Shown: positions 7,142-64,000 of the stretch, one piece after another
How positions within the stretch are numbered: position 1 is the first letter of the stretch
Layout of the letters: every line of letters starts with the position of its first letter
IMG/VR virus record: IMGVR_UViG_3300025012_000028
Location: 150,554 to 214,553 of that record
Length of the DNA: 64,000 nt
Reading direction: 5' to 3' (one strand)
Position numbers and translations under genes: made by a program
Notes under the pieces: model-generated
Database searches by the model: none
Seen by the model: the letters and a program-made list of their open reading frames with translations, nothing else
What the model was told of the DNA's origin: nothing

Positions 7142-8023
7142 ATGTCTAGAAAACTCACAAATGAAATCATCGATGAACGTCTACTAGGAAGAAAAATTAT
7201 CAGAATTGGTGACTATAAAACTGCATTAACCAAAATATCATGGAAATGTTTGAAGGATGGTTATGTTTGGAACGCAACACCACACGATATAAATTCAGGA
7301 TATGGATGTCCTGCTTGTGCCAATAAAATACCAATTACGAATGAAACAATAGACATCAAATTACAAAACAGATCTATTGTCCGAATTGGCGATTGTATTG
7401 GACAGAACAATAAAATTTTATTCTGTTGTCAAATATGTGATTATCAATGGGTCACAACACCGAAAAGTATTTTACATGGAAATGGTTGTCCTGAGTGTTC
7501 GGGTAAAGTACCATTAACAAATGAAAGAATCGATAATAAATTATCAAATAGACCAATAAAAAGAATTGGTAATTGTACCGAGGGCAATAAAATTAATATA
7601 GAATGGCAATGTCTTATAGAAACTTGTGGTTCTATATGGAAAGCTTCGCCGGGTAGTGTATTGAACAATTTCAGAGGATGTCCACATTGTAGGTACAAAA
7701 ATGAAAAACGTATATATGACTATTTAAGAGAACAGTATTCCCAATTAAATATTACTCCTCAATATAGAATACATATAAACAACAAACTTTTTGTGATAGA
7801 TTTCAACCTCAATGATATATTCATTGAATATCATGGCATTCAACATTACGAACCAGTTGAATATTTTGGTGGAAAGAAATCTTTTATCAAACAAATTAAA
7901 CGAGATTACTTACTGAGGGAATATTGTAGTGAAAATAAAATCAAACTTATAGAAATACCTCATTGGTTTACGAACGATGAACAATATGAATTGTTACAAT
8001 TTTCGTTAAAAACTTCGACATGA
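7142..8023 (+). mobile_element. Free-standing putative homing endonuclease: 3 Zn-ribbon repeats plus PD-(D/E)XK/Vsr-like domain
   Basis: Three C..C-W.A.P...GCP.C repeats; IDFNL..IFIEYHGIQHY, RD...YC..NKIKLIEI. Confidence 0.8.
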
Positions 8024-9174
8024 TTCCTAGTAGGCCCATATGAAACCATAGCAATGTTTTTATTCTTGATAAATTCTCTCACATTTTGGGAAATAATTTG
8101 GCCTTCATCAATATATTTTATTGTTTCATCTTCCAATTGATCAACACAAGTCATACAAACTTTGTGGATTATACAAACACCTTTGTTGTTGTTTTCAAAT
8201 AAATCTTTTCTGATAGCTTTTCTAATCAAATCAAGGTTTAAAAAACTAAACCTTAAAGTTCCTTGCCATTGATTGGGAATGTTGGTGGCATCGATGATAT
8301 TGCAATAGGGTTTATCTACCAATTCCATTGGCAATGGTCCGTTACCGTGTCGAGTAGTATAAGTTCGCATAACATAGGTAACTTCAATTTCTTTTATATC
8401 CATTTCAACACTCAATTCTATTATATTATTCAACCCCGTCTTGGATCTTGTGACATACGGAAAGAATTCGTTATTTTCATCAAGAAGTAACCCTTGAGCA
8501 CCTTCGAAAATAACGTTTTTATATCTTTCACTTATATCTTTAGCAGACGATAAAATGATTATTCCTTTAAAGAATTCTAAATCTTTAATATACCGATTGA
8601 TCATATTTTCATTTTCCATCAGTGATTTATAATTATCTGGAATAGTTTGAATTTCCAACTTTTGGATTCGTTTATATGCATATTGTTTGATTTTTTTAAG
8701 TTCTTCATATTCGGAAGTTAAATTAAAAATTAGTCCATTTATGTCGTGTCGTTCGATAGTTTCCGAAATGCCCATTCCACAGGAACCATGACGATTACCG
8801 CCACGCATATCTTCCATCATTTGGTTGAGGATCATGTCATATGGAGTGGTCACTTTACAAGAAGGATCGACATACACAATGGGTTTAACCCCCTTGGAAA
8901 CAAGTTCCTCATACTCCTGTCGGAAAATGATGGGATTGACAATGAAATGTTTGGAAAGGAAAGTGGGCGAACCATTGAAGCTACCGCTTCCAAAATGGTG
9001 GAATACATGGCGAACTCCTTCAGGTGTCACTACGGTATGTCCTGCCTGTGCTCCACCGTTAAAACGTACCACCACGGCTTCCTCGTTGTACTTTGCAGAA
9101 AGGTAATCGACCTGTTTCCCTTTTGCACAATCCCCAAACCCCGAACCTATGACAGCAAATCCTTTCATACTCAA
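7960..9174 (-). CDS. purA: Adenylosuccinate synthetase-like protein (divergent family)
   Basis: GFGDCAKGK, RFNGGAQAGHTV, FEGAQGLLLD, FPYVT.S, Y.TRHG.GP. Confidence 0.85.
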   Translation of the reverse strand: MSMKGFAVIGSGFGDCAKGKQVDYLSAKYNEEAVVVRFNGGAQAGHTVVTPEGVRHVFHHFGSGSFNGSPTFLSKHFIVNPIIFRQEYEELVSKGVKPIVYVDPSCKVTTPYDMILNQMMEDMRGGNRHGSCGMGISETIERHDINGLIFNLTSEYEELKKIKQYAYKRIQKLEIQTIPDNYKSLMENENMINRYIKDLEFFKGIIILSSAKDISERYKNVIFEGAQGLLLDENNEFFPYVTRSKTGLNNIIELSVEMDIKEIEVTYVMRTYTTRHGNGPLPMELVDKPYCNIIDATNIPNQWQGTLRFSFLNLDLIRKAIRKDLFENNNKGVCIIHKVCMTCVDQLEDETIKYIDEGQIISQNVREFIKNKNIAMVSYGPTRNHVEVFNENCNNSYCSSFVNQ

Positions 9175-42816: not shown

Positions 42817-43440
42817 TTAGAAATGCTCCTCTTCTTCATTGGTAAAAGCTTCAACTGCCCTCGCCAGTTCGGGAGGATTGATAATATCTTCCATTCTCTT
42901 ACAAGAAGGGCAATTATCTTTATTGGGTTCTCCGTGATGGTTTTCACACCATGTCACATAACAACGAATTTCTTCAGGTATCCCATTCCAAATTTCATGC
43001 TTTTTAATTTGTGTAATCGGGAATATGAGCTTGGGCAATTCGGATCGACATAGCCCTTGCATTGAATTGTAGATGGTTTTAATTTCATCCAGAAACGAAA
43101 TTGCATCATCATTCATTACATAACCAATCGCAACCTCATCAACATCTTGAGGGATGATATAAGGCAACATTAAGAACAGAGGGGGATAAGACAGACACCA
43201 ATTATTATTACTGCACCTGACTGAGAAATCGATTGGTTCACCGATATATTCAAAGTTCCACTTCTCAAAAAACGGTCGTATTTTGGAGATTGCTTCTAGT
43301 TCTCGTTTGGTCTGTTCACCATTACCAACCAGATTTATATAACCCGCCTTGACTTTATGCCCTTCTTTTAAAAGACGCCAAATCAAATAGGTACTATCAA
43401 CACCACCACTCCAAAGAACAAATTTAGTTTTTTCTTTCAT
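42817..43440 (-). CDS. queC: QueC-like PP-loop ATPase
   Basis: LWSGGVDST; C-terminal WC...CPSC. Confidence 0.6.
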   Translation of the reverse strand: MKEKTKFVLWSGGVDSTYLIWRLLKEGHKVKAGYINLVGNGEQTKRELEAISKIRPFFEKWNFEYIGEPIDFSVRCSNNNWCLSYPPLFLMLPYIIPQDVDEVAIGYVMNDDAISFLDEIKTIYNSMQGLCRSELPKLIFPITQIKKHEIWNGIPEEIRCYVTWCENHHGEPNKDNCPSCKRMEDIINPPELARAVEAFTNEEEEHF

Positions 43441-44510: not shown

Positions 44511-44690
44511 TTATTTATAATACCAACTAATCTTTACTAATGATCCATCAACTTTATCTACAAAACTACCCAAGTAATCATCTTGTTGAAGCGTTCCAGA
44601 ACGTATGATAGGTTTGATGGAAATTGAATCTGGAGGTCGCACATTGACACAACCAGAAAGAAAAATACATATTAAAATCATTTTAAACAT
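44511..44690 (-). CDS. 59-aa late lipoprotein
   Basis: Hand translation MFKMILICIFLSG|CVNVRPP...ISWYYK; lipobox LSGC. Confidence 0.7.
   Translation of the reverse strand: MFKMILICIFLSGCVNVRPPDSISIKPIIRSGTLQQDDYLGSFVDKVDGSLVKISWYYK
44512..44519 (-). promoter_or_regulatory. T4-type late promoter TATAAATA
   Basis: Exact consensus upstream of 44485 start. Confidence 0.75.
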
Positions 44691-44730
44691 AGAAATCCCT
44701 CATTACGTTTATTTATAATGAGGGATTTCT
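44691..44730 (-). promoter_or_regulatory. 15-bp RBS-occluding hairpin with late promoter TATAAATA (44710-44717) in loop
   Basis: agaaatccctcatta-taaataaacg-taatgagggatttct-ATG on minus strand. Confidence 0.8.
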
Positions 44731-44734
44731 TTTC

Positions 44735-45940
44735 CTATTCTGTTACTTCTTCTACTTCAAGATCATCGGCAATCCCTTCGGAAGCTGAACAATAATTAAA
44801 CTTGGCTCTCATATAATCGGCCAATCCATGTTTCAAAAACTCTTCCCAAAATGCGGGAGTCATTTTCGCCTTGGTCATAAGATCATCTTTCTTATGAGCT
44901 AAGGAAGGTATTTTTTCAGGATTGATCTTATAGGAACTCTTTTCCTTCAGAAAGATTCCTTCTTCCTCATAACAGAATTCGAACAGACCGGAATAAGGTG
45001 TAAGCCCTTCTTCAAAATCAATATTGAACTTGATTTTAGTTTTCTCTTTTGCGGTCCTACATTTGACATTGGTGCTTGTGATCCTCGCCCCAATTACTTC
45101 ATCTTCTTTATCATTCTTAACCTGTGCTTTTGAGAAATCACTAATGATGGAGGAATTGTAAAGCGAACCTTCACCACCCGATATCACCTTACCACCATAC
45201 CCACCAATCTGAGAATATACATGGTTGATGGGAACGATAGGAACATTTTTGATACCAGCTTTGAGTGTTACTGTCCTGAACAATGCGCGGAGTGCCTGTT
45301 GCTTTGTCATATCCCTTGAATCAGTTCCAGTGGTTTTATCCGCAAGTTCTTTCTTCGAACTGATATTACCAATGGAGTCGATACCAATAAAAACTTTATC
45401 ATCGGGATCGAGTTCATCGATTATGTTGATCAGTTGTGTATTAAGTTCTTCAATGGTAGGAACCGGAATGAACAGCATGTTCTCAGTATCAATTCCACGT
45501 TTCTTCAGATCTTCTTTGGAGTTGTTGGACATCTCAGTTTCAAATAGAACGAAGAAGTATCCAAGGTCGCGCTGTGCGTGTTTAGCAGTCTCTAACATGA
45601 GATAAGTCTTACCGACCGAGTTCAGACCCGCCAATTGCCACACCCTACCAGACGGCATACCCTTATACGGATCGCCACTAATTTGAGCATTGAAAAGATA
45701 ATTACCAGTATTAATCCAGTCACGGATGGGATACTTATCTATTTCGTTGTCGCCCATTAACTGCGCGTACTCAGAACCAGACACATGTTTCAGACGTTCA
45801 CCAAAAGACATTGCTTTCTTTTTAGCTTTTTCTTCGGCAGAATTGTCTTTGAGAATTTTCTTCTCTTCTTTTGAGAGTTTGATGTTGTTTTCTAATTTGA
45901 TTTTAAGTTCTTTCAACACGTCTTCTGAAACAATAGCCAT
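44735..45940 (-). CDS. uvsX: RecA-like recombinase
   Basis: TG.Y.FNA.ISG, AGLNSVGKT, IDSIGN, DMT, INHVY, GG.G..Y. Confidence 0.92.
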   Translation of the reverse strand: MAIVSEDVLKELKIKLENNIKLSKEEKKILKDNSAEEKAKKKAMSFGERLKHVSGSEYAQLMGDNEIDKYPIRDWINTGNYLFNAQISGDPYKGMPSGRVWQLAGLNSVGKTYLMLETAKHAQRDLGYFFVLFETEMSNNSKEDLKKRGIDTENMLFIPVPTIEELNTQLINIIDELDPDDKVFIGIDSIGNISSKKELADKTTGTDSRDMTKQQALRALFRTVTLKAGIKNVPIVPINHVYSQIGGYGGKVISGGEGSLYNSSIISDFSKAQVKNDKEDEVIGARITSTNVKCRTAKEKTKIKFNIDFEEGLTPYSGLFEFCYEEEGIFLKEKSSYKINPEKIPSLAHKKDDLMTKAKMTPAFWEEFLKHGLADYMRAKFNYCSASEGIADDLEVEEVTE

Positions 45941-46162
45941 TCACACTTCTCCTTTAGTATTTCTCGTCAAGTAAAAAACCACACCGGTTGGTGCTGATAA
46001 TGGTTCTATTCCAACCAATTCTTTCGCATTTAAACTAGGATAAACTCTTTTGCCTAATAAAGTGAAGAATCGTTCTACAAATTTCTTATGGTACTTTTTC
46101 CTTATTCGTTTCTTTTTATGAGTGATGAATTTGAAATAATTTATGTGGCGGTTTCTTTTCAT
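45941..46162 (-). CDS. Small basic protein containing gp23 major-capsid-like segment
   Basis: KRVYPSLNAKELVGIEPLSAPTGVVFYL vs T4 gp23 RRAIPNLIAFDICGVQPMNSPTGQVF. Confidence 0.6.
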   Translation of the reverse strand: MKRNRHINYFKFITHKKKRIRKKYHKKFVERFFTLLGKRVYPSLNAKELVGIEPLSAPTGVVFYLTRNTKGEV

Positions 46163-46362
46163 TCGTCACAAACTCCCTTCCATGCATCATAAAGTTCATA
46201 CCAATCTTCTTTCAACTCATAATATCTAGGCGCAGTTTCCCCACCAAATTTTTCATTCAGGAACTTGACTATATGTTCCCCATAGAACTTTCCCACATTT
46301 TCAACAACCAGTTCATCACTGACAGAATCTCTATCGAAATTATCCTTTCCCACAATTTTCAT
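46159..46362 (-). CDS. Hypothetical protein
   Basis: ORF track. Confidence 0.6.
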   Translation of the reverse strand: MKIVGKDNFDRDSVSDELVVENVGKFYGEHIVKFLNEKFGGETAPRYYELKEDWYELYDAWKGVCDE

Positions 46363-46595
46363 TATTTCATTACTCCTTTGGTAAATGGAAAGATGAATTC
46401 TGAATGATATTCATCACTCAACTTTGTGGGTTTCTTGCCTATTTCTATATCAAACACTTGTGGAAGATGTCTAAATGAATCCCACATATCTGTTATAGAT
46501 AACAGAAATTGTTGAACCTCTTCGGTATTATTGAAAATTCTAATGGAGGTTTGATGAATTGTTCCTAAATGTCCAAATGGTGTGAGCATTAACAT
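46362..46595 (-). CDS. Hypothetical protein
   Basis: ORF track. Confidence 0.5.
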   Translation of the reverse strand: MLMLTPFGHLGTIHQTSIRIFNNTEEVQQFLLSITDMWDSFRHLPQVFDIEIGKKPTKLSDEYHSEFIFPFTKGVMK

Positions 46596-46795
46596 TATTT
46601 GTAATTCTCCAAATTATCTTTCATTTCCTGATGAAATATACTTCCACTCGCAATGTAAGTGGATTTGTTTGTGTCCAGATATTTATCCATCTCTCTGATC
46701 AGTTTTATTGCAGCATGTAGTCTTAATTGTGAATCTGTTGTGGTCATGGGAATGTATGGTGCATAAACATATCCCGGTTCAAAATCTGTTTTCAT
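46595..46795 (-). CDS. Small protein with gp23 C-terminal-like motif
   Basis: EPGYVYAPYIPM resembles gp23 (D/E)AG.(Y/F)Y(A/C)PY. Confidence 0.45.
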   Translation of the reverse strand: MKTDFEPGYVYAPYIPMTTTDSQLRLHAAIKLIREMDKYLDTNKSTYIASGSIFHQEMKDNLENYK

Positions 46796-48946: not shown

Positions 48947-48954
48947 TATTTATA
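48947..48954 (-). promoter_or_regulatory. T4-type late promoter TATAAATA
   Basis: Exact consensus. Confidence 0.6.
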
Positions 48955-52771: not shown

Positions 52772-53194
52772 TTAGTTGTTCTCCTTAATCATAAAATCAA
52801 ACCTTCGGATGGCATAATTATTAGTGACCATCGAACCACTTAAACTAGACATTGCCACAACAGAACTTCGTACCAGTTTATGTTCAATCAATGAAGCTAA
52901 CAATTTACCTTTTGGTGTTGGTAAAATTTGAAACTTACCAAAATATTTTTCTTTGTCTTTATGGATGTTGATTAACACATGGGAAACATTTATCAGATGA
53001 AGATCGAATTTTATTTCCTCTGGTGTATTGTATGCAGTTCCTAAACTTCTATTATTAGGAATGCAGTTCACCATATATTGATCTACCGCTTTATTTAATA
53101 TGTCTTCTGGATATATATTTCCATTTGGATCAGTATATTGTTTATGTTCCTCATTATATATGAACGTTGGAAATAACTGAAAGGTTTCAAACAT
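52772..53194 (-). CDS. Degenerate prohead protease (gp21) paralog
   Basis: NGNIYP..IL.KAV..Y, RSLG, INVSH, GK.QIL.TPKGK. Confidence 0.65.
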   Translation of the reverse strand: MFETFQLFPTFIYNEEHKQYTDPNGNIYPEDILNKAVDQYMVNCIPNNRSLGTAYNTPEEIKFDLHLINVSHVLINIHKDKEKYFGKFQILPTPKGKLLASLIEHKLVRSSVVAMSSLSGSMVTNNYAIRRFDFMIKENN

Positions 53195-56861: not shown

Positions 56862-57647
56862 ATGATAATTTTGAAACCATATCCTTGTGAAACCTGTGGC
56901 AAAGAACGAAATTTTAAATTTAACACAAAAACTGAAAAAGTTTATATGTATAAATCTACTTGTCAGACATGCACTCTTATCGAACGAAATAAAAAACAAA
57001 ATTTTTCTCCACGAAAACATCCCATTGTAGATTATTTTGAATCTATAGATACCCAAGAGAAAGCATATATTTTTGGGTTTCTGTGGGCAGATGGGTGTAT
57101 GAGAGATGCCACACGTAAAAAGGGTGTAAATATTAAAAGTTTAATGTTAGGTATACACCCAAAAGACAAAGAAATTTTAGATTTCATCGTAGCTCATTTT
57201 GGTGGATCGTATAAAGACATCACCTTTCTTGATAAACGGTCTAATAAACGTTACAACAGATCACAGTGGCATTTAAACTCTAAGGAAGTTTATATGAATT
57301 TCATTGGCCTCAATTTCAGAAAAAATTCATTATCAGTTCCAAATCATCTATTCAATCATTTCCTTCGTGGACTTATAGATGGAGATGGATGTTTTCATGT
57401 TAGAAAAAATAAAACAAATTCGATAGAAATTAAGATTACATCAAATTATGACCAAGATTGGTCGTTCATTACTGATAGAATTGATTTCCCACACACAATT
57501 GCCAGATCTGAATATAATTCAGAAAAACGATCTAACTTACATATTTTGGGTGATAAAGTTCAATTTTTAACCTACCTATATAATGATGCTTCATTTTACT
57601 TAAAACGAAAATATAGATTGGCTGAAAAATTCATTATTCGTCCTTAA
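56862..57647 (+). mobile_element. LAGLIDADG homing endonuclease
   Basis: KAYIFGFLWADG and FLRGLIDGDG, LKRK. Confidence 0.9.
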
Positions 57648-59456: not shown

Positions 59457-60422
59457 TTAATTTAATTTTTCGATAACTCCACGGCCACCACAACATTCAC
59501 ATTCTACCAGTTCTTTATTGATCATGTCAATTAATTCTTCCAGATAAACCTTAATATTATTTCGAAGATCTTCATAATTCTTACCTTCAAATTCCTTGGT
59601 TCTAGTATATCCTTTGTAAACTCCTTCCCTGCCCCCTCTATCGGGTGCAGTTTCAAAAACTTGAACATCCCTGTTGTGACGATACCGCACTTCGAATTTA
59701 GGTTTCTTGGGGCGCTTGCTGAAGAAATCCAAATTAACATCCACTTCATATACTTCTGGAACTGCCAATGGAATCATCTTCTGAACAACTAAACAAAACT
59801 CATAATCACTGGAAAGCCTTGCGACCTTTCTATCAATATTCTCCTGAAGATATTGACGAATGATCTTAAAACTTTCCGCCGAAGAAAGCTTACAGGGTTT
59901 GGTTGTCAGAAGAACCGGATGAGTGTTGAGTTGATCCAACAGATTATATTGCAGTTCAAATTTCTGATCTACAATCTTGAACTGATCCAGTTCTTCAATG
60001 ATGTTAAGTTCAAATGGAACATCTTCTAACGTCTCTTCGGTTGTGTCATACTGACATTCATAGAGGGATTGAAACGGACTTATATTGGGTGGAAAGAAGA
60101 ATGTAGTATATTCATCCTCACCATACTTTTTATATTCAATTATTGCAGGCAATACATTGGTTGGTGTAATTTCTTGATTCAATACCCATCTTCTATTAAT
60201 CATCTGAGGAGGAATTACTTTCTCAATCTTAGTTGGAAGCTTTGCAATTTCAAACCACTGAGATTTAAAGGTGGATAATGGTTGTTTTCCATCAAACAAA
60301 AGATCAGAAATGTTTGGGTAATTGACCCAAGATTTATTGCTAAGGTCAGCGGAAATATATACACAGGTCTTGGTTTTGATTGCAATCAATTGTAAGACTG
60401 AATTGGGTGTGAATTCTTTCAT
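59457..60422 (-). CDS. Hypothetical phage protein
   Basis: 321-aa ORF, C-terminal C.CC.G.G. Confidence 0.65.
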   Translation of the reverse strand: MKEFTPNSVLQLIAIKTKTCVYISADLSNKSWVNYPNISDLLFDGKQPLSTFKSQWFEIAKLPTKIEKVIPPQMINRRWVLNQEITPTNVLPAIIEYKKYGEDEYTTFFFPPNISPFQSLYECQYDTTEETLEDVPFELNIIEELDQFKIVDQKFELQYNLLDQLNTHPVLLTTKPCKLSSAESFKIIRQYLQENIDRKVARLSSDYEFCLVVQKMIPLAVPEVYEVDVNLDFFSKRPKKPKFEVRYRHNRDVQVFETAPDRGGREGVYKGYTRTKEFEGKNYEDLRNNIKVYLEELIDMINKELVECECCGGRGVIEKLN

Positions 60423-63720: not shown

Positions 63721-64000
63721 TTAAGCTGCTTCAAATTCTTCGGTGTACTCGCCCTCTGCCTCTTCAGCATCTACAAACCCCATATCTTTTACAAGCCCCT
63801 CTAGGCACTTAAAGAGGAACCCCTTGTTTTTCTTGATCTTCACCTTCCCATCCAGACCTTCAATGCGAACACATACACCTTCCTTCGGATGTGAAGGATC
63901 GATAGGGTCGTGGTTTTCATCTTCAGTTAGACTTTCGATGCGCTCTTTCAGGAACGCGACCTGAGATACATCAGTAATAAGGTGACGTTCAAACTCCACA
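63721..64000 (-). CDS. RNA ligase (Rnl2-like) C-terminal part, truncated by window edge
   Basis: EGVCVR and K.K...F nucleotidyltransferase motifs, D.EE tail. Confidence 0.6.
   Translation of the reverse strand, partial: VEFERHLITDVSQVAFLKERIESLTEDENHDPIDPSHPKEGVCVRIEGLDGKVKIKKNKGFLFKCLEGLVKDMGFVDAEEAEGEYTEEFEAA

Follow-up and report, generated by a model that had tools for sequence, protein, structure and literature searches.

The uvsX-proximal locus

We analyzed a 64,000-nucleotide stretch of DNA (the window), which is the last 64 kb of a 214,553-bp groundwater metagenome contig, JGI 3300025012 Ga0209727_1000023, also recorded as IMGVR_UViG_3300025012_000028. The phage is a distant T4-type myovirus, a member of the T4 superfamily: the window encodes homologues of T4 gp32, gp41, gp44, gp45, gp46, gp47 and gp55, RNase H, gp33-like and gp25-like proteins, and baseplate/fibre genes. 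Its UvsX is only about 35% identical to that of any cultured phage, including cyanophage UvsX, and a megablast search found no close DNA relatives among cultured phages. Listing of open reading frames revealed an ATG-initiated ORF of 73 codons (ORF73) directly upstream of uvsX, in a tightly packed, codirectional run of genes. The following features were identified at the locus.

45941..46162 (-): ORF73, a 73-aa basic protein made of an N-terminal basic helix (predicted) and a C-terminal gp23 Gol-like motif
45968..46051 (-): codons for aa 38-65, the Gol-like motif KRVYPSLNAKELVGIEPLSAPTGVVFYL, equivalent to T4 gp23 residues 100-127
46052..46162 (-): codons for aa 1-37, a lysine/arginine-rich predicted helix that is not derived from the capsid protein (the carrier)
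46173..46179 (-): Shine-Dalgarno-like AAGGGAG, 10 nt before the ORF73 ATG
46159..46161 (-): stop codon of the upstream 67-aa ORF67 (46159-46362), overlapping the ORF73 start (ATGA)
45949..45954 (-): AAGGAG Shine-Dalgarno of uvsX, embedded in the last codons (T-K-G-E-V) of ORF73
45941..45943 (-): ORF73 stop codon, abutting the uvsX ATG at 45940
44735..45940 (-): uvsX (RecA-like recombinase; Pfam RecA, and PHROG 97 UvsX with E 1e-55)
46595..46795 (-): ORF66, a companion mini-protein whose first 20 residues carry the conserved capsid-protein C-terminal motif (GYVYAPYIPMTTT)

ORF73 has a pI of 10.8, with 19 K+R against 4 D+E, and 14 of the K+R lie in aa 1-37 (pI 11.6). A sequence-only reading had described a basic 73-aa ORF with this peptide among early small ORFs lacking TATAAATA, and this description was confirmed. 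The absence of the late promoter motif TATAAATA holds locally. The motif is enriched in the window (19 copies against 6.7 expected), but the nearest copy upstream on the coding strand is 2.8 kb away, at 48947-48954, and the copies at 44710-44717 and 44512-44519 lie downstream of uvsX. A sigma-70-like site at 46215-46186 is no more than chance would give. The designation "early" is an inference from the neighbors (uvsX, gp41 helicase, ligase, gp46/47). Only DNA sequencing runs contained the region, and the three RNA runs listed shared none of its sequence words.

The neighboring small ORFs are conserved accessory genes unrelated to capsid protein. ORF67 belongs to small PHROG families of unknown function (19873, E 6e-10; 21874, E 5e-9), and the 114-aa ORF at 46796-47140 matches PHROG 4848 (E 4e-22). 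Further genes of the window include a 404-aa adenylosuccinate-synthetase-like protein at 7960-9174 (-), which matches PHROG 1211 (E 5e-68) and Pfam Adenylsucc_synt and resembles the PurZ-type enzymes of phages with 2-aminoadenine DNA, and a QueC-like protein at 42817-43440 (-). The only sizeable plus-strand gene in this part of the window, at 56862-57647 (+), is a homing-endonuclease-like ORF (PHROG 4645 endonuclease / 5046 HNH; faint LAGLIDADG Pfam hits), which is inserted in the gp55-gp47 interval just upstream of gp47.

ORF73 carries a stand-alone gp23 segment

To test whether the resemblance to gp23 is more than chance, we performed profile and sequence searches. Pfam Gp23 (PF07068) matched aa 36-67 to profile positions 11-42 of 376 with E 7.1e-5; the score of 22.8 bits is just under the curated gathering cut-off of 24.4 bits. 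PHROG 138 (major head protein) gave E 4.7e-4, and Pfam and PHROGs gave only capsid-protein matches. HMMER aligned aa 38-65 without gaps to RRAIPNLIAFDICGVQPMNSPTGQVFAL, residues 100-127 of the 521-aa T4 gp23 chain 6uzc_a, with 12 of 28 residues identical (16 of 28 to the family consensus), showing that the T4 segment named in the sequence-only reading was correct. An exhaustive phmmer scan of 1.84 billion representative proteins returned nine other proteins at E<1e-3, and all nine carry this Gp23 block. The resemblance is more than chance.

No other Gp23-like sequence exists in the 64-kb window, indicating that ORF73 stands alone and is not part of a capsid gene. With 73 aa and less than 10% of the profile covered, it has no HK97-fold body and cannot be a capsid subunit. 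ORF73 is a fragment homologue and not a member of the capsid protein family in any functional sense. The capsid gene of the phage itself was not recovered by searches with ORF73 8-mers, with a capsid protein (P0005; no hit on the 214,553-bp contig), or with motif patterns, one of which was searched only in part. The contig ends inside a gene at 63721-64000 (-), which is complete on another assembly of the same phage (L082 287-1684) and encodes a 465-aa noncapsid protein; the 214,553-bp contig may therefore not be the complete genome.

According to the T4 head structures, gp23 residues 66-105 form the flexible N-arm and residues 132-160 form I-domain linker 1 (PMC9546572), placing the motif at the end of the N-arm and the first P-domain strand. 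The Gol region is reviewed as a 29-residue segment with a 20-residue core, which is the most conserved part of gp23, binds EF-Tu domains II/III, inhibits the EF-Tu GTPase, and licenses Lit cleavage of EF-Tu (PMC3014915). Lit cleaves EF-Tu at Gly59-Ile60.

AlphaFold2, run with the family alignment, gave a low-confidence model (mean pLDDT 60, pTM 0.26) with one helix over residues 5-40 (pLDDT 61-69) and a coil over the motif (pLDDT about 50). This is what one expects of a strand excised from a larger fold, which orders only on binding a partner. The ESM Atlas gave only subthreshold Gp23-cluster leads.

ORF73 is maintained by purifying selection

The identical protein was found on 19 contigs of groundwater assemblies. 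The 10 contigs that were read have identical DNA over the ORF and its flanks and are thus uninformative about selection. However, a positional orthologue, P0004 (101 aa), lies upstream of uvsX on another metagenomic contig (L074), together with three shared neighboring genes. Amino-acid identities between the window and L074 were as follows.

UvsX: 57%
114-aa ORF: 64%
91/87-aa ORF: 63%
66/61-aa ORF: 48%
ORF73/P0004: 45-47% over 51-53 aligned residues

P0004 passes the Pfam cut-off with 32.3 bits. In this single orthologous pair, Nei-Gojobori counts showed synonymous sites at saturation (pS 0.712) and a pN of 0.335 (pN/pS 0.47, dN/dS about 0.2), essentially the same as for uvsX (pN 0.296, pS 0.704). 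The APTGVVF stretch within the motif is conserved despite synonymous changes in the Gly and Val codons. A terminator-like hairpin inside the motif codons (45994-45981) has its 3' arm broken in the orthologue, so conservation is at the protein level and not the RNA level. Thus, ORF73 is a selected protein-coding gene and not a decaying fragment. The sequence-only reading had named a missing gp23 profile match, or neutral decay without expression, as grounds for rejection; the profile match is significant, although marginal for ORF73 alone, and the gene is not decaying.

The gene is dispensable. The two closest relatives found through UvsX (L013 and L014; 77% and 58% identical) have gp46, two small ORFs and then uvsX, and they lack both ORF73 and the about 7 kb of extra genes present in the window. 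L014 has an HNH endonuclease gene directly upstream of uvsX.

Capsid-fragment mini-proteins recur in other phages

Next, we asked whether ORF73 is a single oddity. A profile built from the first hits retrieved 982 short proteins at E<1e-3. Many sit on tiny contigs and are truncated capsid genes, and several longer ones have the capsid prodomain and body and look like frameshifted capsid genes. However, at least 18 of the top 120 are 150 aa or shorter and sit on contigs of at least 10 kb. Eight short relatives other than P0004 score 39-53 bits against Pfam Gp23. Seven contexts were checked, four of them on contigs of 66-293 kb.

P0004 (101 aa): upstream of uvsX
P0006 (76 aa): between a T4-type baseplate gene and deoxyhypusine synthase/NUDIX genes
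P0009 (110 aa): flanked by opposite-strand genes
P0165 (143 aa): 214,514-bp contig (L092)
P0219 (89 aa): run of small ORFs on a 261-kb contig
P0188 (81 aa): directly after nrdB, nrdA and a DnaB-type helicase
P0010 (169 aa): run of small ORFs on a 293-kb contig

None of the seven lies in a head module. The shared part is about 40 residues and the flanks are unrelated, comprising basic helices (ORF73, P0002, P0004 and P0010), twin-arginine-like or hydrophobic N-termini (MNRRxFLK...; P0219, P0242 and P0207; L093 5001-5270), and various tails, some of them acidic. The twin-arginine-like N-termini suggest membrane or periplasmic targeting of the capsid peptide, which is unexplained by any model considered here. 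ORF73 is the most divergent member, with E for the nearly invariant Q, L for M and N for I.

Among 50,697 cultured-phage records, the motif is almost always single-copy (2074 places in 2072 records). Second tblastn places in the cyanophages S-CAM4 and ACG-2014e had E values of 1-2 and spanned two unrelated small CDS, and were rejected as chance. Hits in RM378 and RAS14 are full-length capsid genes, not stand-alone copies. Literature searches found no description of such ORFs.

A companion ORF carries the C-terminal capsid block

ORF66 lies two genes and 430 bp upstream of ORF73 and begins with the 13-residue stretch GYVYAPYIPMTTT, which reproduces the conserved C-terminal capsid block (about residues 445-457 in T4 gp23). 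A degenerate-codon search in 2.9 million viral contigs found only five sites: this one and four stand-alone ORFs of roughly 100 aa on IMG/VR contigs of 89-135 kb (L087-L090). The four share 14 contiguous identical residues with ORF66 and continue with a capsid-like C-terminal tail. One of them (L090 13761-14069), which sits between a tail-fibre-like gene and unrelated genes, matches Pfam Gp23 positions 302-335. A relaxed 7-residue version of the pattern is expected by chance about 0.005 times in a 64-kb six-frame translation, as estimated from residue frequencies, and occurs once in the window.

The pairing of the two blocks recurs. P0004 carries the C block immediately after its Gol-like block. 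On L092 (4633-5432), a 123-aa ORF with the C block (29.8 bits, positions 302-355) overlaps by ATGA with P0165, which carries the N block, and the two tandem paralogues share the same roughly 45-residue N-terminal domain. Thus, the blocks are co-located in three different phages and once sit on a common carrier. This modular display argues against random debris.

Another head-morphogenesis fragment may be present in the replication region. A 140-aa ORF directly after the gp46-like gene, at 52772-53194 (-), matches the T4 prohead protease family Peptidase_S77 over profile positions 57-144 of 198 (E 1.7e-5, 24.9 bits, below the 27-bit cut-off); prohead proteases are reported immune triggers (PMC13728456). 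In addition, a 321-aa protein at 59457-60422 (-), about 13 kb from ORF73, is a strong homologue of Gad1, the Gabija anti-defence protein (Pfam PF25705, E 4e-96), showing that the phage carries at least one recognized counter-defence gene.

Possible function of ORF73

ORF73 thus represents a loose, to our knowledge undescribed class of phage mini-proteins, which display a conserved capsid-protein fragment (the N-terminal Gol-like block or the C-terminal YAPY block) on unrelated carrier sequences, are encoded outside the head gene module, and recur in many large uncultured phages. Our data demonstrate the ORF, its homology to gp23, orthology, purifying selection, recurrence and modularity, whereas its expression and timing, its binding partner and the direction of its effect are inferences from sequence and context. 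The sequence-only reading, which had proposed an excised capsid epitope acting as a decoy of capsid-sensing immunity, an EF-Tu binder or an assembly interferer, is therefore partly supported: its structural claim of a stand-alone capsid-peptide mimic is supported, and its three functions remain hypotheses.

We tentatively favor molecular mimicry. In this view, the gene would be expressed from the replication/recombination transcription unit, so that its product would be present before or independently of bulk capsid protein, and the displayed peptide would compete with nascent or unassembled capsid protein for whatever reads that segment. The only experimentally known ligand is EF-Tu domains II-III, a complex sensed by Lit, and several other defence families (CapRel, Avs7/8/10, Thoeris) sense capsid proteins, Avs7 together with EF-Tu (PMC13581612, PMC9712102). 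The most likely role would therefore be a Gol-type EF-Tu/sensor ligand that blunts or pre-empts capsid-triggered abortive infection. The predicted helix followed by a disordered motif fits a displayed linear peptide. However, an early Gol peptide would be expected to activate a Lit-like protease, not block it, unless it binds without activating. Tat-like N-termini of some relatives fit a cytoplasmic EF-Tu ligand poorly, ORF73 is divergent and on its own falls below the Pfam cut-off, the gene is dispensable, and a second motif copy is almost never seen in cultured phages.

More speculatively, and doubtfully on present evidence, large gp23-type phages may encode early-expressed "trigger mimics" on interchangeable carriers, displaying the very capsid peptides that host immune sensors and EF-Tu recognize, to saturate or misdirect capsid-sensing abortive-infection systems. 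This would be a new counter-defence principle and would also explain why the Gol segment has an autonomous, EF-Tu-related activity.

A less likely alternative is a capsid-assembly modulator or interphage weapon. The N-terminal strand (ORF73) and C-terminal strand (ORF66) could insert by strand complementation into folding or assembling gp23-type capsid protein, either chaperoning or timing the phage's own head assembly or poisoning, as dominant-negative fragments, that of a co-infecting relative. In support, both of the most conserved capsid blocks are displayed and co-located, and in T4 the N block lies in P-domain strands that take part in intercapsomer contacts (PMC9546572). The deviation of ORF73 from nearly invariant positions would be expected if it must not poison its own capsid protein, although such self/non-self discrimination is hypothetical. 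Against this, the gene sits in the recombination/replication run and not the late head module, there is no late promoter motif within 2.8 kb upstream, and a basic helix and Tat-like carriers have no obvious role in assembly.

It is unlikely, but possible, that ORF73 is a host-takeover factor unrelated to defence, in which the Gol-type peptide would bind EF-Tu:GDP and the basic helix would bind RNA or the ribosome, damping or redirecting host translation or recruiting EF-Tu as a cofactor. The very basic N-terminal half and the placement among early/middle-type genes fit this view. However, no direct evidence supports it, EF-Tu makes up 6-10% of the E. coli proteome (PMC13581612), making stoichiometric inhibition by a small accessory protein demanding, and carriers differ widely between family members.

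Least likely is a nonfunctional relic, a piece of a capsid gene carried into the uvsX region by illegitimate recombination or homing-endonuclease traffic and surviving only because it is wedged in an operon or translationally coupled to uvsX; the hyperplastic gp46-uvsX region, the HNH gene in L014, the embedded uvsX Shine-Dalgarno and some detection bias of profile searches toward the conserved block would fit, but the intact ORF and motif are retained where synonymous sites are saturated, the flanks are not capsid-derived, stand-alone copies occur independently on a shared carrier domain, and a decayed capsid gene was rejected because the C motif precedes the N motif with ORFs of other PHROG families or without a match in between.

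Why the Gol segment binds EF-Tu has been unexplained since the Lit/Gol work (PMC3014915). Free-standing, selected copies of just this peptide suggest that it has an activity of its own, separable from the capsid fold, and the same applies to the conserved C-terminal block; the question thus becomes directly testable with small, easily expressed proteins. Because capsid proteins trigger many defence systems (Lit, CapRel, Avs7/8/10, Thoeris; PMC13581612, PMC9712102), a phage-encoded copy of the trigger would be a new kind of player in that arms race, whether as decoy, competitor or assembly poison.

Comparison with known systems

The closest known element is the T4 gp23 Gol peptide, the trigger of the e14 Lit protease through EF-Tu. 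ORF73 aligns with this conserved block without gaps, but Gol is an internal segment of a 521-aa late structural protein, whereas ORF73 is a free 73-aa protein with a basic helix (predicted), encoded next to uvsX and differing at several consensus positions (Q to E, M to L); the equivalence is one of sequence. Compared with the T4-type major capsid proteins (PF07068, PHROG 138), the homology is significant but local. PHROG 12830, a 128-position family annotated "major head protein," is matched by 9 of 10 aligned family members (best E 2e-6) and weakly by ORF73 (E 0.018), with the motif at the C-terminal end of the profile, as in ORF73; this PHROG may, however, consist of split or truncated capsid genes.

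Phage mimic-type counter-defences, for example orphan antitoxin-like proteins against DarTG (PMC11825919), share only the concept of an accessory gene that copies part of another protein to intercept an immune interaction. Those mimic a host antitoxin or DNA, whereas here the copied element is the phage's own conserved structural trigger, a case for which we found no description in the literature searches. Satellite-encoded capsid-redirecting proteins (P4 Sid, SaPI CpmA/B, PICI Ccm) are small or capsid-like proteins that interfere with a helper phage's capsid assembly and provide an analogy for assembly interference. They have no sequence relation to ORF73 and are encoded by satellites and not by the phage itself, and Ccm is a full HK97-fold protein, not a peptide.
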